From: Neoechinorhynchus agilis
Taxonomy: Eukaryota > Animalia > Acanthocephala
Direction of reading: 5' to 3'
DNA: 64,000 nt
NCBI GenBank assembly: GCA_051530055.1
Contig: CM121342.1
Coordinates: 1,832,797-1,896,796, forward strand
Under the pieces are notes generated by a model. It saw only the letters and a program-made list of their open reading frames with translations, was not told the origin of the DNA and searched no databases. Positions 1,672-46,539 of the stretch are shown piece after piece; position 1 is the stretch's first letter; each line of letters starts with the position of its first letter. The position numbers and the translations under genes are program-made.

Positions 1672-2763
1672 ACATCAACCAAACAACTATACCTTTTCCA
1701 AACCGATTGCGTGTACTTTTTTTATCCCTAAACTTGCTTGCGCTTTGCGAGCACACTTACGACAATACTCAATGACGTATTCTTATCGACGTTTCTATTC
1801 TTTCTTCTTTATCAAGGGCTAATAAATTTGCATCGTTTTGAAAAATACCATGATTTTAATGAGTAGATCAACGATTTGTTGCAAATGAAGTTTTTTAATG
1901 ACTCGGATTTAAAATTGAATGCCGTGGGATTATTATATCGTATCTGTTACTAAATGGATTCAGATTTGTGTTTTTTATTCCTGTCGAAAAAAAATTGACT
2001 CTTTCTCACTAACCCAACAAGAAAAAGTCTGCAAAATTCTTAAATTGATCACATCTTCCGATCCATTTTGAGTTCTAAAATTTAAGCCAATTACAACGAA
2101 AAAGCATTATTTTGGATGTTGTGCACTGAAGCACAAGTTCGCAAAGGTCATAAGAATGTTTGACGTTTTCCAAAGAAGTTCTTAGGTTATATTGCTTTTA
2201 ACAATAAAAATATTGTTCGGCGTTATTAAATCTGCATTAAAAGTATGTTTTTTGTGAGTCAATCACGGTATTTCAACTTGGACAGCGATATCATTTTTTG
2301 ACTTGTTCAAAAGAAATCTCACCACGGTTAAATTTCACTGCCATTGAAAGTGAAATCAGTGAACGTCCGATCCGCAATAATTCGTTCAATCAGATTCGTC
2401 GAAGATAGGCTTTTGCACACCATCCGCCATGTCCAGTAAAAACTCTTGCGTTACTGCTATAAATTCTTAAAGAAAATTTGAATGGATCACCCTATGAAAA
2501 TTATTTATTGCGACGAATTAGTTGTGTTGACTGTTAGGCTGGATAAATTACTCAAACGTCTCTCTACCGTTGACGACATAAAATGTAAAGTGAGAAATTA
2601 ACGGAACTAATAAACTTAAAGTACAAAAATACTATATCGGGCATTATTTTTAATCAATGGGAAACATTCTAATTTTTATTTTACGAAAGCTTAATGAACG
2701 GCATTAGCGATTATCAATACTTAGTACAGTTTCGGTGAGCATAATCTCGGCGATGGCGTGTTC

Positions 2764-3100
2764 GATTTATTTGAAATATTTCACATTCAAACAATGACTG
2801 ATGAGGCGAGGTTACTTAATGAAACATTTCACATAAATCAAATATCTTGGATTATTATCTTCGGATGAAAAAAGACTTTCTTTATCTTAGTTATACCATC
2901 GTTCGGATTTAGATTCACAAATTTATTTTCCCTGATATTTCACCTCTCGGATTATTCCGACATCTCCTCAAGGTTCGTCCGGGCAACATGTTCGTCAAAC
3001 CCCAGTTCCTGGACTCATTGCCCACTATAACCTCTAGAGGACTCGAATCTCTCCTTGAGGAAATGTCAGAATTATCCGATGTGAAATATCGGAAATGGTT
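2764..3100. repeat. Foldback of family A repeats with degenerate hammerhead-like cores (2798 +, 2934-2971 -, 3055-3090 +)
   Basis: Inverted arms 2920-2975 and 3052-3100 (cctcaagg...ccttgagg; gatatttcac...gtgaaatatc); ctgatgaggcgaggttac at 2798 matches 38353. Confidence 0.6.
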
Positions 3101-3789
3101 GATTTTATGGCGAAGAAATTAAAATGATCTTATTTTTAAAATCCGATATTTCGGCACAATCTTGTACCCTTATCAAGGTCTAAAAATTACGTCCGGCTAT
3201 TCCCTTCAACCGTTTCCACTTGGCGGATGAACATTGCCTCCAAAATTACACGGTCCCATTTTGTTTCACTGTGTGCCTAAATGGTGGCGTTGCCAATATC
3301 CACGACGTGATCTTGTTGCTCAAAAGTGGTTAAGTATCGCGGAACTGGCATCGGTGCCTCTCCTCAGAGCACATTTGTGTTCTTTGGTTCTTTCCAAATT
3401 AGGATTTAATACATTCGGTGCAAAGAATTTTGTACACCACTCCTTTGCCTTGATGTTCTTCGCGTTTCTTCACCATGGAGTTTAATTGCTTAGCTTTCTT
3501 GGTGTAGATATGACACTCGATGTCTTTGAACGATCAGATTATTAATTGTAGTGAACAGCTCATCATCGACGAATGGCGCATCTATGAAGGCCCCTTGTAT
3601 TGGCTCCTGCAACACTGCTTTCCTTCCATAGAAGGCCCTGCAACTAGCTCTTCTTATCATGCAGATTGGATAGCATTTTCCTTTTAACAAGCTCAACAGA
3701 AATTCAATTCCTCGCTGAGGGAGTCTTGGTCGGAGCAATAGTTATAGGCCCGGTCAAATTGCGACTTAATCCTAGTTACTTTAGATTTA

Positions 3790-3990
3790 ATTGGTACCAT
3801 TGTAATTAAAGGGGCTGTCTATGCGCGATTGGGAGGGTAAGTATGTTTCAAGCCTACCGGGTGTGCAATTCTGGCAGAGGTACGTAGATGACACTTTTAT
3901 CTTAATCGACAAGTTCACAGAACCGAAAAAGTTTGCTCACATGCTGAATTTCAATCACAGCAACATCCAATAGTCACCGTGGACTTGGAG
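3790..3990 (+). mobile_element. Penelope-like reverse transcriptase remnant
   Basis: Translates PGVQFWQRYVDDTFILI...HMLNFNHSNIQ (RYVDD catalytic motif); runs directly into the 140-bp tandem repeat. Confidence 0.65.
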
Positions 3991-3991
3991 A

Positions 3992-4360
3992 AGGAAAATG
4001 TCGGAATTATCCGATGTGAAATATCGGAAATAAATTAGTGAATCAAAATCCGAGTGACGGTATAACTAAGATAAAGAAAGTCTCTTTTCCCGCGATGATA
4101 ATTATCCAAGATATTTGATTTATTTGAAATTGAGGAAATGTCTGAAATATTCGATGTGAAATATCGTAAATAAATTAGTGAATCTAATTCCGAACGGTGG
4201 TATAACTAAGAAAAAGAAAGTCTCTCTTCATCCGAAGATAATAATCCAAGATATTTGATTTATTTGAAATTGGGGAAATGTCTGAAACATCCGATGTGAA
4301 ATATCGGAAATAAATTAGCGAATTTAAATCCATGGTGACAAAACTACCAAAAGTAAATCA
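3992..4360 (+). repeat. Tandem repeat, 140-bp period (~2.6 copies), each with a hammerhead-like core
   Basis: gatgtGAAAtatcg recurs with GAAA at 4018, 4158 and 4298; units are near-identical. Confidence 0.85.
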
Positions 4361-4535
4361 ATTATGTCATGCCCGTGATTATATTCATCAAAATTATACT
4401 TTGAATATCCCGAATGATTTTCTACCTATCAATACTTAGTAATTGTAAATATCGATCGATATGTGAGGACGTAGCGGGTTATATGATTGGAATTATTGTT
4501 TAGGTCTTCTTCACCCATTAAAGGGTTTTATTAGG

Positions 4536-4567
4536 GATGTTTCGAACCTCGTCTTGTTCATCATCAG
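4536..4567 (-). ncRNA. Minimal hammerhead-like core (pLTR-type), probably degenerate
   Basis: Minus strand CTGATGA-t-GAAC-aagacgag-GTTC-GAAA-catc followed by taataaa; no convincing stem I. Confidence 0.4.
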
Positions 4568-4877: not shown

Positions 4878-5006
4878 TATTCTTGTTCAGCGGCTTAAAC
4901 CCCGAGACGTATTCATGTTATTTAATATTTCGTGGACAAAATCCACCTCTTCATATATTGTTTGTAAGTTTAAACGTCTCAGGGGTTGAACCGCTCAACA
5001 AGAATA
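4878..5006. mobile_element. MITE-like element with ~33-bp imperfect terminal inverted repeats
   Basis: tattcttgttcagcggcttaaaccccgagacgt versus acgtctcaggggttgaaccgctcaacaagaata. Confidence 0.45.
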
Positions 5007-5752: not shown

Positions 5753-6553
5753 ATGTCCCAAGCAGCTCAGGAAGCACCAATGAACCCATTAAGTAAACGA
5801 GAAGACGAAATCTTGAACGATGACGAAAGCATCACTCGACTTGGTCCTATAATTTTCCGTTCCTCGTGGACTCTATGGATGGCGGATAATACTTCCAATG
5901 GAATGGGCACCTATGAATATATGCAACGTCTCAGGAATGTGCTCACGATTAAAAACAGTGAAGATTTTAACTCCATGATAGAAAACGTTGCACCACCCCA
6001 TTTTTTGCCAGCGTCTTACAGTTACAACCTCATGAAAAATGGATCCCTTCCACTTTGGTGAGTCCTGTCACCATTTATGACTCCTACATGTTTATCAAAA
6101 AAGGGAAGATCCCACTCACATTGAAGGAGGAGAATTCGAGTTTAGATGCTCAAAGGCTTACACTGTGAGTGCCGCTTTTTTTACATAAATTTTCATGAAA
6201 ATACTCGTAGACATTTGCATGGACAGAACTAGTTGCTGGTATACTTCTTGACAAGTTCAATGATAACGTACATCCAGGTAAGTAGTGTTTTATTTATAAA
6301 ATTCTATAATTATAACAGAGGACGAGATCCTTGGTGTTGGCGTCAGCATTAAACCTCATTTTGACACGATCCAGATCTGGCACAAATACGCTCTATATTC
6401 AAGCGATGCAGACATTCAGTATTCTATACGGTATTTATTGCCAGGACTATCGTTACCTTACTACAAACGTACGCTCGAATTTCATAACTTTTAATCCGAA
6501 ATTGTCACTTTTCTATAGTGCACTTCTCCAAAGTTCAACAACAGACTGGATAA
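5753..6553 (+). CDS. EIF4E3: eIF4E family cap-binding protein, class III-like; 5 exons (introns 6058-6103, 6165-6210, 6278-6318, 6469-6518)
   Basis: Four GT-AG introns (46, 46, 41, 50 nt) give a continuous frame: SWTLWM...YSYNLMKNGSLPLWEDPTHIEGG...EDEILGVGVSIKPHFDTIQIWH...YYKLH, resembling eIF4E3. Confidence 0.8.
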
Positions 6554-6815
6554 TTACCAATCGGTTACGTTTTCCGCCGAAGTAAATCCATAAACACGAC
6601 TGTACTTCTGAGTGTGTGAGTTAGAAAAACTAGCATCCATAAACGTTTTGTTGAAGTAATTAAGAAACAAAAATTATGATTAAGAGCCCTTATTAGTTTC
6701 TGTCATGATATAATCGAAACTGAACACCCTAATTCAGCACAGATTTAACGGCAATAGTGACAAAAAATTTAATCCTCATTTTGATTGATAAAACAAATAC
6801 TTAGCACAATGTTTA

Positions 6816-7728
6816 CCTGACTTCTAGAACATGTTCGTCCGTGTTCCATAAAGGCAAAACCAGTATTCGTAGCAATTCATTGTAGCTTTTATCTCAAACA
6901 ACGAACACAATGGCGACTCTTCGGTTTCGCGTTTAAAACCATTTATACGTTTTTATTCAATGGATTGTATACCCTAAGTCCTGACTTCTAGAACATGTTT
7001 ATCCGTGTTCCATAAAGGCAAAACCAGTATTCGTAACAAATCATTGGAGGCTTCATGCGGAACAGAAAACACCAAGACGACACTTCAGTTTGATGTTGAG
7101 AACGAAGGAATCGATCGTAATCATGGGATTTCATACGTTAAGTCTTGAGTTCGTTGGCGTATTCATCCGTGTTCCATAAAGGCAAAACCAGTATTCATAA
7201 CAAATCACTGTAGCTTTAATCTCAAACAACGGACACAATGGCGACTCTTCGGTTTCGTGTTTAAAACCATTTATACGTTTTTATTCAATGGATTGTATAC
7301 CCTAAGTCCTGACTTCTAGAACATGTTCATCCGTGTGACATAAAGGCAAAACCAGTGTTCGTAACAAATCATTGGAGGCTTCATGCGGAACAGAAAACAC
7401 CAAGACGACACTTCAGTTTGATGTTGAGAACGAAGGAATCGATCGTAATCATGGGATTTCATACGTTGTCTTGAGTTCGTTGGCGTATTCATCCGTGTTC
7501 CATAAAGGCAAAACCAGTATTCATAACAAATCACTGTAGCTTTAATCTCAAACAACGAACACAATGGCGACTCTTCGGTTTCGTGTTTAAAACCATTTAT
7601 ACGTTTTTATTCAATGGATTGTATACCCTAAGCCCTGACTTCTAGAACATGTTCATCCGTGTGACATAAAGGCAAAACCAGTATTCGTAACAAATCATTG
7701 GAGGCTTCATGCAGAACAGAAAACACCA
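6816..7728. repeat. Satellite array, ~164-bp monomers alternating A/B (~328-bp dimer), left part
   Basis: atccgtg...ataaaggcaaaaccagt anchors at ~6837, 7001, 7165, 7329, 7491 and 7655. Confidence 0.95.
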
Positions 7729-9060
7729 CCGCCACCAACAACAAGATTTATTCATCATTTTGAACATGTAGATGGAAGCTGAACGAAATAATGAAATACA
7801 AAGTTCAATACGGGAAGCCCGGAAACTCATCAGCTCTCCGGCCTATGGAAACGGCAAGGAATCTATGTGTTGATGCAAAGATTCGACAAAAACAGTCTTT
7901 TGTTCTGGGGACGACCTCTTGTGAAAAATACTAGGCCAGGATACTATAGCTCTTCCAAATAGCTTGCGATTGTGTTGAGCTTTTTCTAAGATTCGTGGCT
8001 CGCCTTGCTTTTTTTGAGACCTAATTTCGGTATTTTTTCATTCTATTCAAGTCAAATCTCGATGAAAGATACGCCGTAAAAGTGTGTCTTAGGATTCGTA
8101 ATTTTAGTGGAGTGTTAGAATTTGCCGGGCCGGCATCATTAGTAGATTTGATAAGATTGTTAAAAAGGAGTTTAAGATCCTTCCAAAGTCTACAAGAACG
8201 GGCTTTAAAAATACACATAGATTTCTACATGTTCAGTGATAAATTCATTAAAGGTAAAAAGGAATTGAACAAGCTTCATCTAATCTCCGCCCGCGAAAGT
8301 CCATAGTGACTAGTTGCGATGGGGTATCGAAAGGTTGGTGAACTGTTCCGAATTCCTAGAGTCGGTATTTGGAAGCGATGACTATACCACACGGGCTGGA
8401 GGCTTTAGACAATTTGTGAACTCATTCCTTGTTCCCGGTACCTGTTTCCCACTATTCTTAGCCCATGCTCAGTATTTCTTAAATTCGGGACATCCTCTGT
8501 AGAAGCTCGAATGCTGTCCTATGCGATTAGCGCAAAGTTTTTTCGAATTAGGGCACTTTTCCGAGCCATGAGTCGATTCGGCACAGCGGCAACATTTTTT
8601 GATGAAAGATGAGGGCAGGATTGGTGCCAGTGTCCCCATTGTTGGTAGATATTGATTTGAGGGAACATATAATCATCCTGTTCGCAATTTGATTTAAACG
8701 AAAAAAGAATTTCGATGCAGTTGAAGGTGCAATACTGTTGGGAGCACAAATCTTCAAGCCCATGCCTTTGGCCTTCGACCATAGCGATTGGAATGGGTTG
8801 CCCTGACTTTCTTGAATATAAGAAGTACTTAATCCTTCAATTGAAAGTTAGTTTGAATTGTTCCCGCTCTTCTTTGTTAATGGAAGGTTCGATCCCTTTG
8901 ACCAAAAGTTGCACTTTCTGTGAGCTAGTCGAGACCTTGTTGATTTCATTTGCAAGATTGGAATTAGAGAAATTGACGATATGTGTCATCCAATTGTAAG
9001 CTTTTAAATATATTCCCATTGTGAGCAAATAGTAGGTTTAGATGGCCAATCCTTTTTATA
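7729..9060 (-). mobile_element. Decayed Penelope-like RT N-terminal region
   Basis: Fragmented minus-strand frames with LVTMDF and PKTHFYGVS (cf. PxFYGLPKIHK); many stops and frameshifts. Confidence 0.45.
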
Positions 9061-9074: not shown

Positions 9075-11661
9075 AGATAATAACACGTTTATTCTTAAAA
9101 ATACAAAGATAGAATAGGCGGACCCATGCAGCTTTGGGTCCTCATAAGCATTTCAGTTCACAATTGTTCAAAAAGCGTATTCGCTAGGATGGGAATATCC
9201 AGTCGAGGGATGCCGTTCGGGAGATAATATCTGGTTGGAGGGATGCATATTCGGGCGGGACTATCCAGTCGGGAGAGGTTCGTTCGGGTGAGGATGTGTC
9301 CGTTCGATTGAGAATATCCGGTCGGGTTGGAAGGTCCGTTCTGGTGGGAATTGGAGTTTATTGCTTGCAGGAGCGCTTATAAGGCTGATCTTTCCTCAGA
9401 ATCATTTCAGGTTATGATATCCGAGAGAAGATTGGACAGCATGGAAAAAATGAGCGTATATATAGGAAGGTGCGAGGTTGATGGAGGATGAATCGAATTA
9501 GGATTACGAGTGTTGTGCTCGTGTGAAAAGGGGACGACACGTGGTAGAAATTGTGGTGGTAGGGTTGATAGGCATTTTGATTGTTTTATGAAAATAACAT
9601 TAAGGCATTCGGTGAGAGGGGGAAAGTCAGCTATGCAAATTTTAGATGCTCTTTTATGAACAATTTCAAGACGGCGGATTAGCGATTTGGAAAGGTTGCA
9701 GAATACAGGATAGCCGTAGGCGAGGGAAGGTAAAATAAAGCAGAAGTAAAATTTGTAGAGATCGTGTGAAGGGATTCCTAAATGTGGGATGCGTTTGAGG
9801 AGATAAATTTTAAAGCGTTGTGCTTGAGGGGTAGAGTGATGTGCGAGTCCCATTTCAAATTTGATTGAAATTGGATACCCAGAATTCTCAGGGAGGTTAC
9901 TCGTAGGATGTCACTTAGAAGCTCAGGCGGTGATGTGGCGTTCCGGGAGAGAGGGGACCATTTCGAAGCATTTAGAGAAATTGAGGTGGAGTTTATGATT
10001 GGTGCAGGAATCTCTTATGTGTGTGATTTCTTTAGAATTTAAGGAAAGGGAGAGGTGGGGTGGTGAATGGGTGATGTGGGTGATATCGTCGGCGTATAAG
10101 AAGAGTTTAGGGTGAGAGGAGAGAGGTTTGAGGTTGTTCAGGAAAATATTAAAGAGAAGTGGTGACGGCACAGCACCTTGAGGTACATGCCTTTGGTGAG
10201 GGATATACTGATAGAAGAGGTAGAACGGTAGTGAATGTATTGTTTGCAATTGTGAAGATAAGATTCGAGCCAGCAGATCTGCCGCAAGTTGAGACCAAAA
10301 TCGGAGCAGGCTCGGACAAGGAGTGAATGGTCCACGAAATCGAATGGTTTCGATAAATCAAGTTGAATGAGACGGGCGACGTGGGAGGGATTATTGTCGA
10401 GGTTACGTAGGAGAGTGTCATAAACGCAAAGTAGGGCAACGGTTGCAGAAAATTTGGACCGGAAGCCAAATTGTAGGGGTGATAACTTTTCGTGGAGAAG
10501 TGAAAGACGAGATTTGAAACATTTTTCGGTGATTTTTAGAAAGTGCGGTTAGAATGGATATTGAACGGAATGATTTGGTGGAAATAGGATGTTCTTTTTC
10601 GGAAGAAGTATAACTTTAGCAGTTTCAGGCATGCGGTGTTGATGCCATATAAAAAGGTGTGGTTTATAATGTGGGTAAGAGGGTTGAGAAGTTCGGGGAT
10701 GACGCAGCGAAGAGCATTTCGGATTGAGAGGATGAATTTCTAGGTAATTTCTTGAGAAAATGTAGTACTTCGTATGGCGAAACTAATGGGAGTACAGGAG
10801 AGTTGAAAGAAGTTTTAGTTGCGAAAGTGAAAGATTGCGTAGAGTCTCACGTTGAACAATGATTGTAATTTGAGTCAGGGCAGTGGTTCTAATTGATAGT
10901 TTCTAAGACATGTTTCAGTTCAGAAGAGATCAAATTTGGGAAGGGGTTCAGTGTTGCGTAGACAAAGAGAGTCCTTGAAGGTCCACCATCATGTAGAATT
11001 GCCACCTGTATTCGTAAGTGCTTTTTGTAAATGGGGAAAGTTTGGAGAGTTATTTCGATGGGCCTCAGATGCTTGCTTTTGAAAGAGTTTTTAAGGTGGA
11101 TGTTGTCCATGGTGGTTCGCGGTTGGAGATCCTAATGAATTTGTCGGGAATTGTCGAAGTTAGTGAGTTTTTTATCATTGAGGTGAGGGAGGGCATGTCC
11201 AAGGAAGGGTCATTTGTGTTTTCAGAATGGGATTTACGGATGTTAGAGTTGAACAATTTTAAAAAAATTTGGATTTGATGATCACGTTTATCCCAAACGG
11301 GTAAACCTGGAAATTTCATAGGCTGAGGTAGGGTGCGGGAGCAATAAGGGCAGAAGAGTGGTCAGAGTTCGCGGGGGGGAGGGAATTTAGAGACTGATGA
11401 GTAGTCGTCGATAAGTGTGAAAGCAAGTGTAGATTCCTTCTCCAGGATCTGAGATTGTGACCCATGATTGGAGAGCGATTGCTCTCGCACTTCTTGAGCC
11501 AAAAAGATACACGTATATAGTTAAGTGGCCGTGTGTTACCATCCTCACGAACTCCACGGTCATCGGGAGGATCTGGAGGTGTCGAGACTGATTTTGGAGT
11601 TTCAACGGCCTTTTTCGCTGCAACGAAAACTGCGTAAGAGTACAACGATCACTCGCTCGAA
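9075..11661 (-). mobile_element. L2/CR1-group LINE, 5'-truncated and frameshifted (APE C-terminus plus RT)
   Basis: Motifs NSDHS, REPPWTT, DLSKPFDFVDHSLL, PQGAVPSPLLFNIF, FLYADD; 3' tail aataaacgtgttattat is shared with copies at 31.26 and 46.51 kb. Confidence 0.9.
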
Positions 11662-13787
11662 AAAACACCAAGACTACATTTCAGTTTCGTTTTGAGAACG
11701 AAGGAATCAATCGTAATCATGGGATTTCATACGTTAAGTCTTGAGTTCGTTGGCGTATTCATCCGTGTTCCATAAAGGCAAAACCAGCATTCATCACAAA
11801 TAATTGGATTCCTCACGCGGACGAAACTTCAAATTCGTGTTGAAAACGATGGAATCGGTCGTAATCATGGTATTTCATACGTTAAGCCTTGAGATCGTTC
11901 GCATATTCATCCGTGTTCCATAAAGGCAAAACCAGTATTCGTAACAAATCACTGTAGCTTTAATCTCAAACAACGAACATAATGGCGACTCTTCGGTTTC
12001 GTGTTTAAAACCATTTATACGTTTTTATTCAATGGATTGTATACCTTAAGCCCTGACTTCTAGAACATGTTTATCCGTGTTCCATAAAGGCAAAACCAGT
12101 ATTCGTAACAAATCATTGGAGGCTTCATGCGGAACAGAAAACAACAAGACGACACTCAGTTTGATGTTGAGGACGAAGGAATCGATCGTAATCATGGGAT
12201 TTCATACGCTAAGTCATGAGTTCGTTGGCGTATTCATCCGTGTTCCATAAAGGCAAAACCAGTATTCATACCAAATCACTGTACCTTTAATCTCAAACAA
12301 CGAACACAATGGCGACTCTTCGGTTTCGCGCTTAAAACCATTTATACGTTTTTATTCAATGGATTGTATACCCTAAGTCCTGACTTCTAGAACATGTTTA
12401 CCCGTGTTCCATAAAGGCAAAACCAGTATTCGTAACAAATCATTGGAGGCTTCATGCGGAACAGAAAACAACAAGACGACACTCAGTTTCGTGTTGAGAA
12501 CGAAGGAATCGATCGTAATCATGGGTTTCATACGTTAAGTCATGAGTTCTTGGCGTATTCATCCGTGTTCCATAAAGGCAAAACCAGTATTCGTAACAAA
12601 TCACTGTAGCTTTAATCTCAAACAACGAACACAATGGCGACTCTTCGGTTTCGCGCTTAAAACCATTTATACGTTTTTATTCAATGGATTGTATACCCTA
12701 AGTCCTGACTTCTAGAACATGTTTACCCGTGTTCCATAAAGGCAAAACCAGTATTCGTAACAAATCATTGGAGGCTTCATGCGGAACAGAAAACAACAAG
12801 ACGACACTTCAGTTTCGTGTTGAGAACGAAGGAATCAATCGTAATCATGGGTTGTATACCTTAAATCCTTACTTCTAGAACATGTTCATCCGTGTTCCAT
12901 AAAGGCAAAACCAGTATTCGTAACAAATCATTGGAGGCTTCATGCGGAACAGAAAATACCAAGACGAAACTTCAAATTCGTGTTGAAAACGATGGAATCG
13001 GTCGTAATCATGGGATTTCATACGTTAAGCCTTGAGATCGTTCGCATATTCATCCGTGTTCCATAAAGGCAAAACCAGTATTCGTAACAAATCACTGTAG
13101 CTTTAATCTCAAACAACGAACATAATGGCGACTCTTCGGTTTCGTGTTTAAAACCATTTATACGTTTTTATTCAATGGATTGTATACCCTAAGCCCTGAC
13201 TTCTAGAACATGTTTATCCGTGTTCCATAAAGGCAAAACCAGTATTCGTAACAAATCATTGGAGGCTTCATGCGGAACAGAAAACACCAAGACGACACTT
13301 CAGTTTCGTGTTGAGAACGAAGGAATCGATCGTAATCATGGGATTTCATACGTTAAGTCTTGAGTTCGTTGGCGTATTCATCCGTGTTCCATAAAGGCAA
13401 AACCAGTATTCGTAGCAATTCATTGTAGCTTTTATCTCAAACAACGAACACAATGGCGACTCTTCGGTTTCGTGTTTAAAACCATTTATACGTTTTTATT
13501 CAATGGATTGTATACCCTAAGTCCTGACTTCTAGAACATGTTTATCCGTGTTCCATAAAGGCAAAACCAGTATTCGTAACAAATCATTGGAGGCTTCATG
13601 CGGAACAGAAAACAACAAGACGACACTCAGTTTGATGTTGAGGACGAAGGAATCGATCGTAATCATGGGATTTCATACGTTAAGTCTTGAGTTCGTTGGC
13701 GTATTCATCCGTGTTCCACAAAGGCAAAACCAGTATTCGTAACAAATCACTGTAGCTTTAATCTCAAACAACGAATACAAGGGCGAC
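11662..13787. repeat. Satellite array, ~164-bp A/B monomers (~13 units), right part
   Basis: Same monomers as 6816-7728, resuming at the base where the left array stops. Confidence 0.95.
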
Positions 13788-14242
13788 TTATCTTGTCGGC
13801 CGATGAACTTGACACTTCAGTTACTCGTTTAAATGCTACAAAGTAATTCCGCATTGTAAGAATGGACTCTTCTTTTTGCACTTGAGACGCCCATGAACAT
13901 GATTTTATTGATGTAGTCACGTGGAAGAGTGATACCGACCTCCAAGACTTATCTATCTACGACAGGGACGTCTATTTTGCCAATAGCATCAGGCATCACA
14001 CTTTCTCCCAACAGCTAGATCTTCTCCATTGTCTGTCACATTTAATGATAGACATGTCAACATATGAAATGAAGGCACGTCTCCACATTTGCACATAATG
14101 CCACTGGTGGCAGCCGACCTAATCAGCCTACCCTCAATCCCTCGCGTTGCTTCTATTTTTCGCGCGTATATTCTGCCTCTCATCCACACACATACACATA
14201 AATACGGTCCTTTTCGATCCATCCTCTCACAAATCCCAGACA

Positions 14243-17263: not shown

Positions 17264-17799
17264 TGGTTCTGAAATGTGCAACCGGTTTGAAAGTGATTTT
17301 ATAAGGGAATATGATATCGTAATTGTTAGGGATTGTTTCTGGTTTAAATACCTTTTATAGCTTGATACCAAAAACATTTGTTGATTTCCCTTTTCGGTGA
17401 ATTTCCAAACCACAAAATAATACAATTGGCAAATCTGCTTATAAATAAAATACATGAAACGTTTTAGGGCAAAATTATTATTGGCATTTATGAGCTTTTA
17501 TGTTTAACGTCACATTAATGGTTTCATCCTGTGTGGAAGAGAATAAGTCATAAATGTAAACAAGAGTTATGCCGTGGATGATGCAATTTTAGACGTGAAT
17601 TTACGATGCAAGGAAAAACGTTCTTAGGATTTAAGGTGAAAAAACTGCGAAGCACTATCGGTTATGTTCGTCATAATCGTAACTCTAATTTTCTGTTTTT
17701 TCACCAAAAACGTTCCAGATTTTAGGCTATGATTTAATTCAAGGGAAAAGATACTTCCTTTTGATAGTTATAGCACTCCGGAGTTAAATTTACTACCTT

Positions 17800-18190
17800 A
17801 TTTCCGATACTACACGTCTGAGAATTCTGACATTAATAAGGTTTGCCATTATTTGTGAGTTTTCCAGACGAAATATCGGTAATAAATTAGTTAATTTAAC
17901 TCCGGGGTGGCAAAACTATCAACAGGGAGAAGAGTTTTCTATATTTTCAGTCACAAAACCAAACTAATCAAGGTAGAATTTTATTTTACCGCCTACAAAA
18001 ATGTATTACAGAAAGCATAAATTAAAAGCTAATTAATTACGAACTTTCAAATAAGGGCAAATCTTGATGATGTTGGATTTGTCCGGCGAAATATCGATAA
18101 TAATTAGTCAATTTAACTTTGGGGCGGCAAAACTACCAAAAGGAAGTTGAGTTTTCTATATTTTCAGTCGCATAATCAAATTAATCAAGA
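17800..18190. repeat. Family A repeat copies including a degenerate hammerhead-like core at 18064-18095
   Basis: ttgatga-t-GTTGGA-tttg-TCCGGC-GAAA-tatc-gat; downstream aataattag...ggggcggcaaaactaccaaaag as in other copies. Confidence 0.6.
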
Positions 18191-19345: not shown

Positions 19346-22300
19346 TTAATGGACGTCGATCCTAAACTCATACTCCTGATCCAGACCAATAAAAGTATCA
19401 CTCATGAGTTGAAATGTGAGTTTATCTGCGCCAGTAGACGGTGTGAACGTTACTTGAACTTTTTGATGCTGTCGTCGTCCCATATTAAATCGTTTAAGTG
19501 CAACCAGTTCGTCATTTGTGGCAAGAACGCAAATCCATCCGCCGTCGTATTTCAAGTTCGAAAATAGCCGCGTTAAATGACAAACGAGTAAGTATTTCTT
19601 TTGCGAAGATAGAGACACTAACGATTCACAAGACTTGTTGCTTTCAACGTCAATGAAATCAAAATTTAGTTGAAGAAGAGGAATTTGAAGAAGACGTTGA
19701 TAAATCTGGTTCACCTGGCACACCTTAAAATGTTTCTTAAGAAACTCACGACTATCCTTTCTTGATTGCACGTAGAAAGCAAGTTCGGGTAGGGTCTTGA
19801 GATTCAATTCCTCGATGCTGGTTTCGTCCATCATAGTCCGGAGTTCATTTTCGTAGATCCAAATAGCTTGTTTGGTCATTTGCATGATGATAACAATGAG
19901 AAGTGAAGTGTTCAGAAAAGCATGATTGGCTGATACGTCCAAAGCGGCTTGGAGAACTCGGTATATTTGGTCAATAACACTCTTGAGGTCAGTTCGAAAA
20001 TCAGAAATGGGCATTTCGGATCGCGAGAAATGCGCTTGTAGAAGAAGAAACGTTTTTGTGTTTGGAGACTCGAAATCGGGATTCTGGATACTCAACGGGA
20101 GAGCGTTAGCGAAGTCCGCACACAGTTTGTCTTCATTGTGACGGACGGGCAATTCTGAGAACTCTTTAGCATCACTTACTAGCTTTAACACTTCAGTCAG
20201 TGACATTTGCTCGACTAACTTTGTTCGAAACAAATAGAGTGTTTCATGAGAAAGATAATAATAGGATGCAATCGCACCATAGACGGTCGTAGTGATTTCT
20301 TCATCATCCAATCGTTCAACACATCCGGACGAGACGAGTTGGTCCAATGTGGATCTAACGAGTTGGTCTAGAAAAGTGTTAAGTTCCGAAAGGTTGTCGA
20401 GTTTATAGTAACTCGGATTTCGAAGGAGTCTTCTAAAGAAATAAGTCCATGTGAGATAATCGATGGCATCCGCCACGCTTGTGACGGTAAGAGTAGCCAC
20501 TTCGGCGTTCAAATGATCTGGAAGGACTTGAAGAAGACTCGATTCAACAGGAAACGGTTCATACAGAAACTTTTTATAAAAGTCTTTTTTTGTGTCCTGA
20601 ACCATAATCACAGCAACTCCACTTGTATCAAATTGAGGACGTCCTGCTCGACCCATCATTTGAAGGACGTCCGTGATTGGGTAATCAACGTATTTGTGAG
20701 TTTTCCCGTCGTAAAACTCAGTTCCTTTGACGACCACCAAATGAGCAGGTAAATTCACCCCCCATGCAAGAGTCGCTGTACTCACAAGAACTTGAATCTT
20801 GCATTCACTAAACAGATTTTCAACTATTTTCCGATCGCGATCACAAAGACCGGCGTGATGAAGCCCAATTCCAAAAGCAAGGCACAAATGGAGATTTGGA
20901 TCACGAATTAAACTTGTGAAATTTGCTAATTCATCCTCTGGCATATGAAGCCAGTGTTTAGGACAACCATCAGCAGCTAGATGAGAAACAAGATCCAGAG
21001 CCGTAAGACGGGTTTGTCGCCGCGATGCCACGAACACAATAGCTGGCTTATTTGGAGAATAAGTTCGAATCGCGTGATAGCATGGTTTGTTCATTAAAGC
21101 CATCCTTGGGCAGTAATGTTCGCCAGGATAACCGGATATGTGTGCTTCTAAAGGAACCGGTCTCACAGAACTTCTAAAATTGTACAAACCACAGCTATGC
21201 GGTTTAATCCCCAACCAATCACCAAGATCAACTGCGTTGGCAACGGCAGTGGAAAGACCGATGAGACGTGTCGTTTGATGTCGATGAGCAGTTACATAGT
21301 TTGCCCGACTGACAATCGCCTCCAACACAGGCCCTCGATCTTCCCCCAATAAATGAATTTCGTCAATAATCACGAGAGCAACTCGTCCTACATACTCTCT
21401 CGATCTCCACATTCTGCTCACCCCGTCCCATTTCTCAGGGGTAGTTACTATAATATCTGCGTTTTGCAGCTGTTTCCAGTTTGGAGTGTAATCGCCAGTA
21501 AGTTCAACCACTTGCTTATCAAGAACATCCTTGAATCTCTTACCCCAGTCGTTTACTCTTTCCCGCACCAGAGCTTTCATGGGAGCCACGTACACAGCTT
21601 TGTATCCTGGAGATTTTGTGAACAAACGTAGAATAGCGATTTCAGCAACGATGGTCTTTCCAGAGCCTGTTGGTGCGCCCAATAGGACATTTGAGTCCGT
21701 GTGGTATAGACAATGAAATAATTGCGTTTGAATGGGATTAAACGTTTCAAAATTTTGATAAAGTAGTTCAAATCGATTGTTGTTAAGAGCAGTTTTTGGA
21801 AGAGGGGTAAGTGGAAGTAATTCAGTGTGTGGCCGGTGGTATTCTGGTAGGATTAGATGCTGAAAGGAAACTGGACACGTCTGATCGGTTCCAAAGAATC
21901 GATCGGAACAGCAACGTAGTAAATACTGTGAAGGAAGAGGTTCGGATATTGGAATAGTAAATGATACTGATTGAATGTACTCGATGCGAACTTGCTTTTT
22001 GTTGAATACTATCGACTGGGAATGATAGATAAAATCGGTTATCGGGTCTTCTAGCCACAGCCAAAAAATTGACGAAGAGCTGCCGTGATGAGCGTCACTC
22101 CATTTAAATGCTGGAGTTAGAGAAACAGATATTTTGAGCACTGAGCGCGTCAATGGTTGAACTGAAATTACTTGAATATCGAGTTGAGGTAAATGAGTGC
22201 ATAGACGCTTCAAATGATGAGCCATTTGCATTTGATGAACGATTCCGCCGAGTTCTTGTGCGCTCATTTCCATAATGACGTCTGGAGTAAGGTTAGACTG

Positions 22301-25300
22301 TTCAACTTTGATTATCATTTCACATGGAGCGTTCAGTTGGCGTAAACTATAGTGATTCTTGGTTATTGACAAGGGAAGACTTTGAAAAGATGATCAAATA
22401 CGCAAGAGTTCAAGGTTCATCGGGTAATTTCTCTAACAAGAACCACTACCGTGCAAAGGACTAAAAAAGTGCCAGCAACGCTGTTGAAATGCTCTTGCCA
22501 TCAGAAGACACCGCGATGCCATGAGTGCTCGATTTCGTTTTATTGCAATCAGAAACAACGCCCTTAGAATTCGTCCAGCATTTTGACTTACATAATTGAT
22601 ATCAGCATTTAAAGAATGAGTTTTTACTTCTGCTTGGCTCATGTATGCCTGAATAAGAACAAAGGCCTTTGTGTCACCAGTAGTGGCCTGAGCAGCTTTT
22701 GCGAGCGGAATCTCGCACTCATCTTCATAAAGTCGATCCAGTTCAGCTGTCTCATCGTCCCGGACTTTTAGTTGTCTAAACTCTGATGCATTTGCAACGA
22801 GATCAAGGACGTCTGAATCAGTCATCAGAACTGAATCCATCCGTTCATTAATTAATTCGATTGTTTCATATCGAATGTAGAAATGGCTAGCAATCCGTCC
22901 CAAATCCGTAGCGAACAAGTATTCGTTTAGAGGATCGAAGCGAACCATTTTAGCTTCTTCAAGAGCATTAACAGTTTTTAAAACAACATTTCGGCGATAT
23001 AAAGCAAGATTTGGATCATTTGATAAGTCTGCAAGCGTTAGGCCGTAGGCTTGTGGATTAGAAAGTAAACGTACGTAAAAGTAAGTATCAGACAACCAAC
23101 GGACAGCTTCATCGACACTGGTGACAGTTCCCAAAACAATTTCAGCATTCAGCCAATCAGCGAGTGAATTCAAAAGTTTGCTCTCGATTGGATTTTGTCG
23201 CATTGCTAATTGAATATAGCTTTGGAATTTATCTCGAGTGGTTATGATGATTCCGTGCCCACGATTGTCGAACTGGGGTCTGCCTGCTCGTCCGAATATC
23301 TGAAGAACATCTAAAATTCCGATATCCACAAATGCTCCTTTTTTCGATTCGTAAATTTCTGTGCCTTTTATGAGCACGGCGTGAGCGGGTAGATTGATTC
23401 CCCAAGCAAGTGTAGCCGTTGAGACGAGAACTCGGGTTTTGCTTCTTCGAAAAAGTTTCTCAACCAACATTCGGTCGCTTCTCACCATGCCTGCATGATG
23501 TATTCCTACTCCGTGTTGAAGGAGATTGTAAAGAGCTCGATGTTGGATGTTTGAGGGTAGGCGTTCTCCTGACATTGCTTCAGATATAATACTAAGCTTT
23601 TGTCTAAGGAATTGATCGACTAAATACGTGGCTGTTCGAAGTGTGGAATTTCTTGAATGGACAAAAACGATCACTTGGTTGTTTTGTCTCACTTCAGCCA
23701 ATACTTCTTGAAAGCAGATTTCGTCAAAAAGTCGCTGGCGGCCCAAAAGATCAGTCGAGGTGTTAATGCCGATGTATGTTTGATCCAGTGGAACCGGACG
23801 AAAGCCTTCGTCAAAATAAAAAAGTCCTTTATATGGGTTCACTCGAAGAAACTCAGCAACATCGATGTAATTGGGAAGAGTGGCGGATAAGCCAACGATT
23901 CGGATTGGTCGTTGGTATCGCTCGACTTGTCTTAACGTTCTTGCCACAATGCACTCAATCACAGGTCCTCGATCATCTTGTAAAAGATGAATTTCGTCGA
24001 TAATTATAAGCTTAACTAATCTCACAAATGAATCATCGCCTTCAGCACCAGTAATTTTTCGGGTGATAACGTCCCATTTCTCTGGAGTGGTCACAATCAA
24101 CTGAGTCTCTTGCATCTCCCTTTTGGTAAGTTGCATGTCTCCTGTTAACTCTCTAACTCTTATGTCGCCGAGTTTTGATAAACGGTCGGAGAAGTTCTCA
24201 GTCATTTCAGCTGCAAGAGCCTTCATAGGTGCCACATAGACTATTTTAAACGCATCTTTGTCGATAACAGGAAGCCGAGTGAATTTCTTAACGATATTAA
24301 GAATCGCCAATAAAGCGACGTTTGTTTTCCCTGCTCCAGTCGGGGCACAAACCAGCAAATTAACATTACTTTCATTGTAAGCTGCATTAAATACAGTACT
24401 TTGAATCGTATTGAGGTGGGAATGGGCAAATACTGAACTCAAAATCGGGTCGTTAAGTTCTGCGATTTCGATCTTAGGAACCGGGTGACTTTGGAATCGA
24501 TTCGCTGGAGCCGGAATGTGTATCCGTTCGAACGTGTCTCTAATACGGTGACTGGCGTTCGCAGGAAGAGCTAAAGATGCACCAGCGTGTTGCATGAATG
24601 CACCACGTGAATCAAATACAAATGGATAGCTTGGAATAACTTTTAGAGGTAAAACTTTCTCAATAACCGTTTCCCTTTTTAATTCAGTTGTCAATTGAGC
24701 GTACCGTTCATTTTTGAACGTCTTACCCTTCATTTCCCTCTTCAATTTTTTATTTACCTTAACGTCGGCTTCTGTTCTTACCAATGGCCGCAATTGCTGG
24801 TTTGGTTTCTTTAAAGATTCTAATATCACAGCGCGGTTAGTTACCAATTCAGAAACCAATTCAATTCGATCGTAGCCCAATAAATTTACAAGACTATCTT
24901 CAATGTCTATATTAGATTCGATTACTGTAATAACCGGATCGAACATGTCTTCACAACCGTTCAATCGATCCATCAACCATTGACGACCGTACTGCTTAGG
25001 TTTTACGACATCCACTTTATTCTTTTTTCGTATTTTTTCTAAAATTCTGTCTGCGATAACATAATCTTTTTTGAGTTCGTTAATTTTTGGAACCTCCATA
25101 GAGAATTCCTCTTCTTTGAAATCGAGGTTTCCTTTGACATGTTTAAGAGAAATGCTATCAAGAACATCAACGGTTACATCGTCTACAGAGTCAACAATTG
25201 TAGACCTAATCTTTTCTCTGAACTTTTGAACCTCATCTGGGCATAAATGTTTAGTGCCACGCCTGAATTCAAAAGCTTCTCTTTTGATAACCTTCTCTTT

Positions 25301-25369
25301 TTGTTCCTGTTCGTCAAATAATTCATTACGATAGAGGTCAGTAAATTTTTTACATTTTGAACCCTTCAT
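19346..25369 (-). CDS. ASCC3: ASCC3 Ski2-like helicase (two helicase plus Sec63 cassettes), single interruption near 22347-22449
   Basis: Both cassettes have intact motifs (APTGAGKT/DEIH; APTGSGKT/DEIH); HYCPRMALMNKP and KKDFYKKFLYEPFPVESSL are typical of ASCC3 rather than Brr2. Confidence 0.95.
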
Positions 25370-25860
25370 TTCCAAAATCTATCTTAAATGGCACGTTGGA
25401 CTTCGTAATATTCATGGAAATTCTTTAATGTTTAGTTTCCCATCCCTTCCTGGGTATATTTTCCCTTTTTTGGTACACTAGAAAGTGATTAAACCACGGG
25501 AGGGATATGAGGACGGTGAGGGATTCGTACAAACTCTTAACCGTGTGATGGTTAAGGGTATTAAGTGATTCAATGACTTCTCCAATATGAGAGATCGATA
25601 TCTACAGATCTGCTTAGTCCCGTAGCACTCGTGTATATTAACGAACTAAACAAGCCAATGCTCAATATTCGTTCTCGTTCAAAGTAGGAAATGTCTCTGG
25701 AAGAAAGAAAACGTCAGCACCGACGTCATGATGAAACTATGAAGGACTGCAAGCTTCTATAATGTTGAATCATCTTGCGAAATACTATTTGATTTTCCAG
25801 CTGCATGATTGATCCCTTGCGTTTAGAAGGAAACAAAGCCAGATAACTGCTCTTTCCACA

Positions 25861-27479: not shown

Positions 27480-30260
27480 CTCACCATTACGCGTGATCGC
27501 ATGATTAAAAAGTAATAAATATGCGATTTAACGTTTTGTTATTGTATTGTATGCAAAGGTACTTTCCTACGTTGCACCGTAGGTATAAGCCCGTCAAATA
27601 GAATTAGACTCCGCAAGGGATCTAAAATACACGACAGCAGTCCTGTTATGCGGCAATTCGCGTCTCTTAAAATCAGGTCATCGTATGTACGACAGTTCCC
27701 TTTGCCTTTACGATACAATGTCGTTGGCTTCCAGAAAAGGAACTGTTGCACGGCCTGTGGGCAAGACGCCTCGGACCGAATTATATTGCCCGTGAACTGC
27801 AGTCGTCTGCGGCGCAAATATTTACTGGGCGGTTGGACTCCGGCTCTCTTATACAGTGCTTTGTTGGTCACTTTATCTGACCATCTGACCTTGAACGCCG
27901 CACGTAAGAGAGATGAATGATTTTGGTCCAACTGCCTCGTCGCCGTTGGTGACAGTGTCCAGGTCTCTGCATTGTAGTAGAGAATGCTCTCAATTAGAGT
28001 CCTGAACAGCTGCGAACGGAGTTCATCTGGCAAAGACTCACTGTCAAACAGTGGTTTAAGTTGCCCCATTGCTCTCCAAACTATAGCTCTCCGTCGGCTG
28101 ACATCCGCACTCAACTCAAGAACGACAGCTCCCAGATAGACATACCGCTCTATCTGTTTTAATTGCCCAACGCCATTCGGCCCTTCGCCAGAGACTGTAT
28201 GCGCGACATGCGGAATCGTCTTTTTCGAGTTGATGATCAGACCAATCGTACTCGCCCTCTCGCACAGTCTATTTAGCATGCGTTGAGCTCCTTCGACTGT
28301 TGAGGACATCAATACGATGTCGTCGGCATATGCCATGTAGGAGGCGCGTATCTCAGGATACCTGCGACCTCTTTTCCTCAACAGAAGAAATCCATCTTCA
28401 TTATTCGGTAGTGCCCATCTCATTACCCAATCAAGCACCAAGATGAAGAGGAAAGGAGCAAATGAGTCGCCCTGCAAAACACCTGAAGTGGTGGAAAAGT
28501 ATTCTGTCAAACCGTCAGCTATCTTTGCGGCGGACCTTGTGTTTTTATATAATGCTATAACGGATGTGGCAATGATCGACGGCACTCCATACTCCTTTAA
28601 GATACTGCCAATCATCGTTCGATTTACCGAATCGAAAGCTCGACGGAAATCAACAAATACCAGCGTCACATCCGTTTGATGAATTCGTGCTTCTTCGAGG
28701 ATCCTCCTCAAAGTAAATATGTGCTCTGTGGTGTCTCGACCTATTCTGAAGCCGTTCTGTTCAATTCTCCGAAACGGTTCGAGGATTGGCTTAATTCGGC
28801 GTCTCAAAATGCTGCTGAAAAGTTTTGCCGTGTTGGACATCAAGGATATACCTCTGTAGTCCTCCATCTTTGTCGAGCAGCATTTCTTGGAGATCATTGT
28901 TAAATGCGCCGTTTGCCAGATTTGAGGTACTGAGCCACCATTCATTATGCCATTCATTATCGGTATGATTTTTCTGGCAATAGATTCAAACCTCAGTACC
29001 TCTGCCATTATCCCATCTGGGCCTGATGCACGTCCCGCACGCATCATTTTCGCCGCAGCGATCGCTTCCTTCACGGAAATCGGTCCAGTTAAGTATGCCT
29101 CAGTGCTTGGGACGATTGTGCCTTTTGGAAATGCAGGACTCACTTCCAAAGACGATAATGGCGAATTGAGAATTTCCGCAAAATAATTTGCGATTCTCTT
29201 TTTTCTGATTTCCGGGGAGGGACCTTCAATCAAAGTTGGCTGTCTTTGGGATATTCCTGTGAGAGTGTTTATCGCTCTCCATGCTAAGGAGGTACGAACA
29301 AAACCTTCCTTATATGCGATCCCGCGAACTGCATCCTCTATCGAAGCTTTTGGTTTTCATTAATGAGGTTCGCAAGTTCAAGACTTGCAATGCGAGCCTC
29401 AGATCGTTTTCCTCTTTTTCTTAGAGTTTTGATCTGCCCAGCCATTGCCATAAATTCACAGTCCTGCCGTATAACCTTTGCAGCTTTTATACGCCTCATT
29501 TTTGGGAGGGTTTTCTCGGCCGCTTCTATCACTGCGTCGCAGATTGACTTGTAATAAAAATCAATATCCGTTTCAGCAGCTGGCATCGAGCTCAGTTGAT
29601 TCTCTAGTTCGATATCGAACTCTTTCCTCTTCTCCTCATTAGCAAGAGCGCCATAGAACGGACGTGGAGGATGTTGAGGCGTACGGAACAACGAGTCACT
29701 CATGCTCAACTGACACATCATCAACTTGTGGTCGGTTGGCAGCCCATCAACTGTGAATGTGTCAGCGTTTTTGACCCGACATTTTCCCCTACGCCTCAAC
29801 AATATATGTTCAAGCTGAGCTAAGCGTCTCTTGGGATTTTTTCCCAAGAGACGCTTTCTTTCACGAGTCCCTAACTTTCTTTCACGAGGCCCTAACTTTC
29901 TTTCACGATGATCGGACTTGATGTTACTGATTCTTGTCGGTCACGTAAAAGAAGCAGCTCCGGCGGCCAGACAGCTACTGATAGTAGCCTGTCAACGCGG
30001 GGTCGGTGTGCCGCTCCACTTGGTGATGCGGCAGCGAACAGGAGCAACAAAATCCACCAGTTCAACGGGAAAAGCGAGGGCGTCGTAGCTCTCGCCGACG
30101 ACTTGAGCGTCGAAATGAGCGAAACTCTCGCCGGAGGCAACGAAAGCGTCAGTCGAAGCTCATCACCGTGGTGGGTACGGACGGTTCAGGTGGCGCTGAC
30201 AGCCGTGAGCCCTTTGGCCAAGCTATTTCAGATAGATCAGATCAGAACGTTTTGGTAATA
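27480..30260 (-). mobile_element. RTE-clade LINE, RT ORF largely open, endonuclease partly missing
   Basis: ASGPDGI, DYRGISLMS, QNGFRIGRDTTEHIFTLRRILE, FVDFRRAFDSV, GVLQGDSFAPFLF, YADD; upstream QLEHILL...TDHKLM is the APE C-terminus. Confidence 0.9.
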
Positions 30261-30559: not shown

Positions 30560-31000
30560 CCGCTACGAAAATCGGTATAAAATAATGTCTCCGCGGGAGT
30601 TCTTCATATTCAGCCGATTTTTGATTCTCCCGCCCCTTTACCAGACCGGACAATGGAGTATTCGTATATCAACGTGCACTTCACCCCATCTGCGGTTACG
30701 AAGTTTTGGTAGGCTTCCGGTGAATGCTTTGCGATTGCTTCCAAGGGGGCTGATCTATGGATAATGTTGAAAGCATTGCGAAATCTATTTCGAGAAGCGC
30801 GGTCGGTGGGTGCACGTAGCATGAATGATTGACTTAGCTCCACACTGTGTGTAACATCCCAGTGGTACTCGACGAAATCACTGGCCTACCGATTCCCCTA
30901 ATTTTCTGCAGAGAATTTTTGCGGCTAGCTGGTGTAGGGTACAAAAAACAGCAATCGGCCGGACACCGCTGCCTTTTTGAGAAAGCGCAGCGGAACGCTA
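30560..31000 (-). mobile_element. CRE-like (RLE-type) non-LTR retrotransposon RT fragment
   Basis: KKGSGVRPIAV..LHQLAAKILC and FRNAFNIIHRS..LEAIAKHSPEAY are homologous to the element at 54.1-56.7 kb. Confidence 0.7.
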
Positions 31001-31091
31001 AAAGATTTGTTAATTTCTTTTTTATTACATTTACCGTGGGCTTAGTAACACAGCTAAATATTCTAATAATATGATTACTAATTTTAGAAAC

Positions 31092-46532: not shown

Positions 46533-46539
46533 TCTGGCC

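Follow-up and report, generated by a model that had tools for sequence, protein, structure and literature searches.

Content of the locus

The DNA analysed here (the window) is a stretch of 64,000 nt from contig CM121342.1 of assembly GCA_051530055.1 of the acanthocephalan Neoechinorhynchus agilis, its position 1 corresponding to about position 1,832,797 of the record. Near its left end it contains a tandem array of 140-bp units resembling hammerhead ribozyme cores, next to a remnant of the reverse transcriptase (RT) of a Penelope-like element (PLE; Table 1). Tandem Repeats Finder reported an array at 3996–4331, with a period of 140, 87 % matches and 0 % indels, in agreement with the exact period described in an earlier note made from the letters of this DNA. 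The units were also recovered by a repeat search, which added two further copies, a partial one at 3058–3116 and an inverted one at 2826–2928.

Table 1. Features of the window. Min-HHR, minimal hammerhead ribozyme; U3·G8, C3-G8 and similar terms give the bases at core positions 3 and 8.
Feature	Coordinates	Strand	Basis or remarks
PLE-type RT remnant	3806–3990	+	Motif C RYVDDTF to ...NIQ, frameshift, VTVDLEKEN; joined directly to unit 1
Second, unrelated PLE remnant	3190–3740	−	C-terminal part of RT (PFVDD...YLHQES) and GIY-YIG-like endonuclease remnant; frameshifts, stops
Tandem array, 140-bp period, 2.4 units	3996–4331	+	Tandem Repeats Finder and repeat search; units 87–89 % identical
Unit 1 of the array	3996–4135		
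Unit 2 of the array	4136–4275		
Unit 3 of the array			Partial
Unit 1, hammerhead-like 3′ part	3998–4025	+	Sequence; nhmmer unit match begins at 3994
Unit 2, min-HHR, U3·G8 core TTGAGGA	4130–4165	+	Descriptor scans
Unit 3, min-HHR remnant, core TTGGGGA	4270–4305	+	U3 and A6G; one helix II mismatch
Sequence 3′ of the array	4344–4430	+	Homologous to the region 3′ of 38353 and, inverted, to 2709–2790 (nhmmer, E 6.7e-8 and 1.4e-8)
Well-formed min-HHR, U3-A8 type	3145–3176	−	TTGATAA-G-GGTACA-agat-TGTGCC-GAAA-UAUC
Dispersed U3·G8 copy, 140-bp type	3055–3090	+	3-bp core-adjacent helix I UCC/GGA; one helix II mismatch
Inverted copy of the 140-bp unit	2826–2975	−	Body 2826–2928 93 % identical to 4168–4270
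Decayed C3 copy, 38353 type	2760–2845	+	CTGATGAGGCGAGGTTACTTAATGAAA at 2798–2824; same gatttatttg/ataaatc arms; head-to-head with the inverted unit
Intact canonical C3-G8 min-HHR	38353–38383	+	CTGATGA-G-GCGA-cgttacc-TCGC-GAAA-UAUC
U3·G8 copy, diverged sister lineage (217-bp unit)	18064–18095	+	G10.1-C11.1, 6-bp helix II, 3-bp helix I AUC/GAU
Head-to-head pair of decayed or 5′-truncated U3-lineage copies	17722–17885		17834–17755 minus; 17847–17885 plus
A3·G8 variant of another family (relative of 31169/58315)	4924–4954	−	Tip of a hairpin with 32-bp arms
C3-G8 min-HHR, family E/F	4536–4567	−	Non-palindromic ACAU
CHMP6/Snf7-like gene	242–826	−	Host gene
eIF4E gene	5753–6553	+	Host gene
ASCC3-like helicase gene	19346–25375	−	Host gene; two exons of ~1000 codons split by ~60 nt
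Glutaredoxin gene	33105–33602	+	Host gene
Gene for INTS8-like tetratricopeptide repeat protein	38601–39629	+	Host gene
F-box/WD40 protein gene	59161–60747	+	Host gene

The motif of the array reads TTGAGGA-A-ATGTCGGA-atta-TCCGATGT-GAAA-TATC-GGAAATAAAT, as the note had described it, and GGAAATAAAT can pair with gatttatttg upstream; when unit 2 is folded by energy minimisation, the proposed arms gatttatttg/aaataaat are indeed predicted to close the structure. GAAA-UA-UC is present in all units, which lack helix III and carry in its place, as had been noticed, a palindromic A15.1-N-N-U16.1, followed by H17.

None of the units is intact. In unit 1, positions 3998–4005 pair with 4010–4017 to give a helix II of 8 bp, including two G·U, followed by GAAA (4018–4021) and UAUC (4022–4025), and the 5′ core box is missing because the junction with the RT remnant falls at ~3990–3996. 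Unit 2 holds the sole complete core of the array, with the bulged A4137, a helix II with one mismatch, GAAA and UAUC. The 8-bp stem II attributed to the family is thus complete only in unit 1, since a single mismatch interrupts it in units 2 and 3 and in the copy at 3055. The affected pair is the same in all three, a C facing T or A in place of G, and in units 2 and 3 it is a U·C. Additionally, the first core-adjacent bases of helix I (GAAA vs GG) are unpaired in the tandem context, and the units have diverged by 11–13 %. With these lesions in unit 1, unit 3, helix II and helix I, no unit-length RNA should be excisable from the array, and the locus is probably inert whatever the effect of U3. 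The U3 units (3998–4033 and 4138–4173) have an ATG at the start of helix II, 28 nt upstream of the cut site, and the frame that it opens has only 11 codons.

Two Penelope-like element remnants

The translation of 3806–3970(+) (…WQRYVDDTFILIDKF…LNFNHSNIQ) matched RVT_1-bearing proteins from a library of 1.84 billion proteins (E ~3e-4), being 42 % identical to residues 179–235 of P0245 over the RYVDDTF...LN..H.NIQ stretch, which upholds the claim that the array abuts a Penelope RT remnant. The RT similarity of this strand stops at …T-V-D-L-E-K-E-N and is followed directly by the middle of a hammerhead core. We rejected that the motif of unit 1 is run-on RT coding sequence, because the RT similarity ends at ...EKEN and the 10 nt that both remnants have in common, AAGGAAAATG, are a coincidence.

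Using the matching RT proteins as query, we fetched 80 metagenome loci of this RT family (296 kb). In these loci, min-HHRs built in the same way follow the open reading frame (ORF) closely on its 3′ side and on its strand; for example, the ORF of locus L005 ends at 2162, with the hammerhead (HHR) at 2187. In locus L035 one copy lies downstream in direct orientation and another upstream, inverted; L005, L012 and L035 have the same layout. This arrangement, with the hammerhead just 3′ of the ORF and on the same strand, ties the RT type to the motif class.

The minus-strand remnant showed no DNA similarity to the plus-strand one. It includes a GIY-YIG-like stretch (GVVYKILCTEC...; HVVDIGNATI...RVILEAMFI), whose first part aligned weakly, in a pairwise comparison, with VIYKIPCECGAKYIGETGRP of the L005 ORF. 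Searches of the remnant pieces against Pfam and PDB returned only spurious sums of pentatricopeptide repeats, and Pfam also missed the GIY-YIG domain in the intact L005 ORF; likewise, a homology search with the X-joined translation of the PLE remnants gave no matches, the decayed query being too poor. The U3-A8 hammerhead at 3176–3145(−) begins 11 nt past the stop of the endonuclease remnant and converges with the U3·G8 copy at 3055–3090, situated 55 nt away. Farther along the minus strand there are the U3·G8 unit at 2971–2934 and then the body of the inverted unit. Both ORF remnants of the window are, then, followed by hammerheads on their own strand, and region 2700–4430 is best read as two different 5′-truncated PLE copies placed head to head, each with its own hammerhead-bearing 3′ region. 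Inverted, 5′-truncated copies are typical of PLEs (Craig et al. 2021, PMC8557442).

The motif as a minimal hammerhead of Penelope-like elements

In intact relatives of this motif, the minimal type I hammerhead RNA lacks helix III, which is formed when two copies pair via their palindromic AUAU. Each core cuts after C17, at the end of UAUC, trimming PLE or retrozyme transcripts, and may yield ligatable unit-length RNAs. We scanned for the class with a descriptor comprising NTGANGA, a bulge of 0–1 nt, four or more base pairs in helix II, GAAA, a 15.2/16.2 palindrome, U and H. Our sample of the genome amounted to ~80 kb (80.5 kb), namely the window, 9.76 kb of left flank and 6.7 kb of right flank; it is a small sample and partly non-independent, several of the motif copies having arisen through local duplication. 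The window and the left flank contained eight sites, against ~0.08 in 200 dinucleotide-preserving shuffles, and no further motifs were found in the 6.7 kb of right flank. Roughly 10 well-formed copies are thus present in the ~80 kb, vs ~0.1 expected by chance. Although the descriptor also allowed no bulge, a 1-nt bulge follows A9 in every credible match, both here and in the metagenome loci; only three doubtful matches (58044, L027 and L039) lack it.

Pairing was examined in a gap-free pseudo-alignment of 13 copies. In helix II, pairing reached 92 %, and each of the four tested pairs showed changes on both strands; the three core-proximal pairs of helix I, a helix absent from the descriptor, were 64 % paired (25/39 cells, from per-pair counts), whereas slid controls gave 27–39 % for the whole structure. 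Rfam yielded no hammerhead match at the gathering score, nor at E ≤ 10 over 2650–4450, which is uninformative because over 31000–40100 it also missed the canonical C3 copies at 31169, 38353 and 40001; its models do not cover this class. The predicted fold of the 38353 copy had z = −4.15, whereas U3 copies folded no better than shuffles (z about −1) and favoured a hairpin, UCCGAUGU-GAA-AUAUCGGA in the 140-bp type, in which GAAA and the cleavage site are buried.

From its sequence, we assign the motif to a known class, the min-HHRs of PLEs. As those described by Cervera and De la Peña (2014, PMC4209133), the motifs found here are of type I and lack helix III; their 15.2/16.2 is palindromic (AUAU), a single base stays unpaired between A9 and 10.1, helix II is long (6–8 bp, interrupted by one mismatch in units 2 and 3 and at 3055), and helix I is short and poorly defined. 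Also as in that report, hammerheads occur here as single copies or as opposite-strand pairs 50–700 bp apart, adjoining PLE ORFs. The array differs in that U3 is accompanied by G8, instead of C3-G8 or U3-A8, and in that the local copies are decayed. A further difference is the A10.1-U11.1 pair of the 140-bp type, since G-C was reported as highly conserved at this position (PMC4209133). The earlier note gave A-U for most copies; this holds for the 140-bp type, but the 18064 copy has G10.1-C11.1, and A-U occurs as well in canonical C3 hammerheads of the metagenome loci (L012, L013, L033 and L043). The base of helix II in the 140-bp type is weak, consisting of A-U, U·G and G·U.

The cut site is followed at 3–8 nt by AATAAA, or by a sequence one base off it, in nearly all min-HHR families (e.g., 4029–4034, 38389–38394 and 31126–31131). 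This sequence pairs with an upstream TTTATT and may be a strand of helix I, a poly(A) signal or both.

Other copies and lineages

The array belongs to a larger family that includes the canonical copy at 38353, with which it shares the gatttatttg/caaataaatc arms, GAAAUAUC, AAAUAAAUC and the 3′ sequence homologous to 4344–4430. Decayed C3 copies of the 38353 lineage are present at 2798(+), 61394(+) and 61091(−). In the inverted 140-bp unit, the U3·G8 motif at 2971–2934(−) has a disrupted 3′ strand of helix II.

The copies of the U3 lineage are 87–93 % identical, vs 100 % for a pair of C3 copies, and they are probably older than these. The C3 pair (31092–31173(−) and 58311–58392(+)) consists of a canonical min-HHR plus 48 nt, 82 nt in all, 27 kb apart and in opposite orientation; these solo copies look like very recent 5′-truncated insertions or the product of gene conversion. 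This pair constitutes the family 31169(−)/58315(+); further families are represented by 40001(−)/25918(+)/40277(+), by 52224(−) and by 4567(−) with its sister to the left of the window. The hairpin at 4886–4996(−) that bears the A3·G8 motif has a predicted fold of −36 kcal/mol (z = −5.7) with arms of ~32 bp.

Core position 3 and the 3–8 pair

In the hammerhead, the general acid is held in position by the C3-G8 pair. With respect to the core boxes of min-HHRs, C3-U4-G5-A6-N7-G8-A9 and G12-A13-A14-A15.1, the array lineage deviates at position 3, which is U throughout; the remaining ten fixed positions agree in unit 2 and in the copies at 3055, 2971 and 18064. U3 was found in all seven copies of the lineage with a readable position 3 (2971, 3055, 4130, 4270, 17834 and 18064 among them), the 5′ core being absent from unit 1 (at 3990) and from the 5′-truncated copies at 17847 and 1030. 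In the sister C3 lineage, C is kept in 4/4 copies, even in otherwise broken ones. The earlier note had stated that U3 occurs in every copy with a recognisable core, which is correct for the copies it listed (2934–2971(−), 3055–3090(+) and 18064–18095(+), all of which exist) but not for the family; the CTGA versions that it proposed to search for are already in the window, one intact (38353) and three decayed (2798, 61394 and 61091).

This distribution indicates that U3 is an inherited mark of the lineage, rather than scattered decay. A mutational hot spot at C3 was rejected, because decayed copies of C3 lineages all keep C and the U3 lineages all have U. We also rejected that position 3 is an artefact of the element boundary, because homology among copies extends upstream of this position in every family. 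The C3-G8 hammerhead at 4567(−) has a U3·G8 sister 8.3 kb to the left of the window (L001, 19118–19087). U3 arose, then, at least two times from C3-G8 ancestors, in families A and E/F, in all cases with G8 kept to give a U·G wobble; a third family shows C vs A at this position (31169 vs 4954).

We then freed each fixed core position in turn and counted the motifs that were otherwise perfect. In the ~80 kb only position 3 departed from the consensus, with U four times and A once; no departure was found at U4, G5, A6, G8, A9, G12, A13, A14 or A15.1. The states of the 3–8 pair in this sample were U·G (4), C-G (3, or 5 when allowing 3-bp helices), U-A (1) and A·G (1), with no C·A. In the 80 metagenome PLE loci we counted C-G (10), U-A (7), G-C (6), A·C (2) and G·G (1), and no U·G; shuffles gave about 0.1–0.2 per combination. 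U·G is thus found in 0/26 metagenome motifs (17 distinct) and in 4/10 here (Fisher p = 0.0036 by copies, 0.03 by distinct lineages). The metagenome tally indicates that the 3–8 pair is in general a covarying Watson-Crick pair in PLE hammerheads; peculiar to this genome is the wobble. The array lineage shows neither C-G nor the covariant U-A.

U3-A8 is a published natural and active covariant (PMC4209133, PMC3088659). The hammerheads of this type, found in Cercyon PLEs of S. mansoni (PMC4209133) and in bacteria (PMC3088659), resemble those of the array in having U at position 3 and an otherwise standard core, and differ from them in that the array keeps G8. Since position 8 stays G, the pair of the array is presumably an intermediate between the two published states and not a compensated state. 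The suggestion of a new core variant has to be narrowed accordingly: U3 is already published, and also present at 3176–3145(−), whereas U3 with G8 retained is unusual.

The six G3-C8 min-HHRs of the metagenome loci (GTGATCA...GAAACGTT, with a 7-bp helix II) are at L018 2209–2241, L029 2081–2049(−), L061 1240–1272, L066 1432–1464, L079 1926–1958 and L080 1046–1078. A relative with a single change, G3·G8, is found at L048 546–514(−). G3-C8 appears to be a natural swap of the 3–8 pair, which the literature covered here describes only as an engineered rescue mutant. In a full scan of single and double mutants, changes in the CUGA turn resulted in low activity, except for the C3G/G8C swap, which restored activity (PMC9901934), and in the Poseidon PAc hammerhead either C3G or G8C abolishes activity (PMC11167929).

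Comparison with retrozymes and with the PAc hammerhead

Retrozyme hammerheads establish loop-loop contacts between helices I and II. The array shares with metazoan retrozymes without long terminal repeats (non-LTR retrozymes; Cervera and de la Peña 2020, PMC7229834; 10.64898/2026.07.22.740005) the tandem repetition of short units that are non-coding and contain a single type I hammerhead, as well as a relationship to the terminal regions of PLEs, and its 140-bp unit and copy number (<7) are within the reported ranges. It differs from them in that it comprises no more than 2.4 units, is joined to a PLE RT remnant instead of free-standing, and has a full core in only one unit. Two competent hammerheads flanking a monomer, as in a retrozyme, are not found, given the missing 5′ core of unit 1 and the A6G change of unit 3. 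A recent preprint derives non-LTR retrozymes from PLE terminal repeats (Li et al. 2026, 10.64898/2026.07.22.740005), and the array, which descends from PLE min-HHRs, resembles a nascent non-LTR retrozyme. Its 3–8 pair places it outside the min-HHRs in the strict sense, and the lack of competent sites outside the retrozymes. Of the earlier proposal of a candidate retrozyme there remains a minimal, dimer-dependent core of hammerhead type tied to Penelope; it would constitute the hammerhead-bearing 3′-terminal region of a truncated PLE copy and is not free-standing.

The PAc hammerhead of the Poseidon PLE from Anolis (PMC11167929) also has a helix II starting with ATG and a cut site ~26–28 nt downstream, like the U3 units, and its cleavage is dispensable for insertion in vitro. 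In PAc this ATG starts the PLE ORF, whereas in the U3 units a stop follows after 11 codons, and their motif is situated 3′ of the ORF remnants.

Origin and activity of the array

The earlier note left two alternatives, a dead family or a tolerated variant, and these are the right ones. We favour, with a probability of about 0.6, that the array is a fossil, formed by 2.4 tandem units of the hammerhead-bearing 3′-terminal region of a PLE behind a truncated RT remnant, and that its wobble core is impaired. The array lies among PLE fragments arranged head to head, and according to this account the 3′ region would have been copied into tandem units behind the RT. The C-to-U change at core position 3 was inherited from the source element and turns C3-G8 into a U·G wobble, probably impairing catalysis, and copying of the lineage could have continued because PLE reverse transcription would not need hammerhead cleavage. 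An impaired core could still be copied, because PAc hammerhead mutants insert normally in vitro (PMC11167929) and Naiads, which lack hammerheads, proliferate (PMC8557442).

Several observations weigh against the impairment of the core. Variation of otherwise perfect motifs is confined to position 3, whereas changes scattered over the whole core would be expected from purely neutral decay, and C-G ancestors gave rise to U·G on at least two occasions but never to the equally likely C·A. Moreover, the 140-bp and 217-bp U3 sublineages differ by ~25 % in their bodies and have all other core bases in common, their differences in helix II maintaining pairing and those in helix I being compensatory (UCC/GGA vs AUC/GAU). 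Together these observations suggest that the wobble core was still under selection in the source elements, although from a small and partly non-independent sample.

These observations also fit a second, clearly less probable explanation, in which U3·G8 is a tolerated, working natural core and PLE or retrozyme lineages stand at the wobble intermediate of the path from C3-G8 to U3-A8. Cleavage would perhaps be slow, or occur only with the PLE protein as chaperone, with helices I and II and the remaining core kept under selection; the 140-bp and 217-bp lineages would in that case derive from working, hammerhead-bearing, retrozyme-like elements. In agreement with this, the C-to-U change occurred in two independent events, each with a C3-G8 sister (38353 for the U3 lineage, and 4567 for the copy 8.3 kb to the left), the 3055 and 18064 copies compensate helix I on a U3 background, and the 3–8 counts of this genome include U·G, C-G, U-A and A·G without C·A. 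The pair does move between states, because C-G, U-A and G-C all occur in PLE loci; U3-A8 is active (PMC4209133, PMC3088659), and the PAc hammerhead cleaves only in the presence of protein (PMC11167929). However, U·G is absent from all 26 motifs in PLE loci of other organisms, single C3 mutants had low activity in the published scan (PMC9901934), and the U3 lineage is older than the identical C3 copies. Additionally, the 140-bp type combines A10.1-U11.1 with two G·U at the base of helix II, and no intact PLE ORF was seen in the ~80-kb sample.

Still more doubtful is that the hammerhead-like fold is kept for a putative non-catalytic job, either as a site for binding or dimerisation of the PLE RT near the 3′ end or as a 3′-end signal involving helix I and AAUAAA, a role that would constrain core identity and leave the 3–8 pair free to relax. 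This could explain the conservation of the other core bases on the U3 background and of AATAAA 3–8 nt past the cleavage site across unrelated families. It is also consistent with PAc insertion without hammerhead cleavage and the failure to find reads ending at the cleavage site (PMC11167929), as well as with the function of hammerheads in PLEs being called unclear (PMC8557442). Nevertheless, the 3–8 pair is Watson-Crick and covaries in other PLE loci, as predicted by catalysis, or at least by an active fold.

Finally, a chance resemblance in AT-rich repeat DNA unrelated to hammerheads, which could appeal to the negative Rfam result even at E ≤ 10 and to the shuffle-like folding of the U3 units, is effectively refuted, because Rfam also misses canonical copies, motif counts exceed those of shuffles by ~100-fold, the U3 motif fills the same slot between the same arms as the canonical C3 motif, and the motif adjoins PLE coding remnants.

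As a fossil of a well-described element class, the array would exemplify how a retrozyme-like tandem grows from the 3′ end of a PLE. What is possibly new is that U3·G8 exists as a natural state and recurs, within a single genome, in several lineages. The existence of natural U3-A8 and G3-C8 families implies that lineages must cross a non-Watson-Crick 3–8 state, and several lineages of this genome appear to be parked at U·G with the remaining core intact. If U·G cores cleave, they would offer a natural system for the drift of a catalytic tertiary pair, and descriptor searches fixed on CUGA would undercount active ribozymes. If they do not, they would provide genomic evidence for the spread of PLE-derived repeats without hammerhead cleavage, matching recent in vitro work.

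Other features of the window

There are two arrays of a 164-bp satellite with a higher-order period of 327/328 bp (6757–7788 and 11660–13788), in which no hammerhead-like motif was found. The RT ORF at 27539–29233(−), of 564 aa, was considered as a PLE candidate and rejected, because it belongs to a long interspersed nuclear element of the apurinic/apyrimidinic endonuclease (APE) type, i.e., a non-LTR retrotransposon; its best matches are 46 % identical, and many of them have an Exo_endo_phos domain. Fragments of a separate dispersed repeat family occupy 9300–11300, 44500–47600 and 53100–53500. The genome is compact, with few introns. Among named proteins, the best matches of the host genes, the ASCC3-like helicase included, are only ~50 % identical and come from assorted animals.

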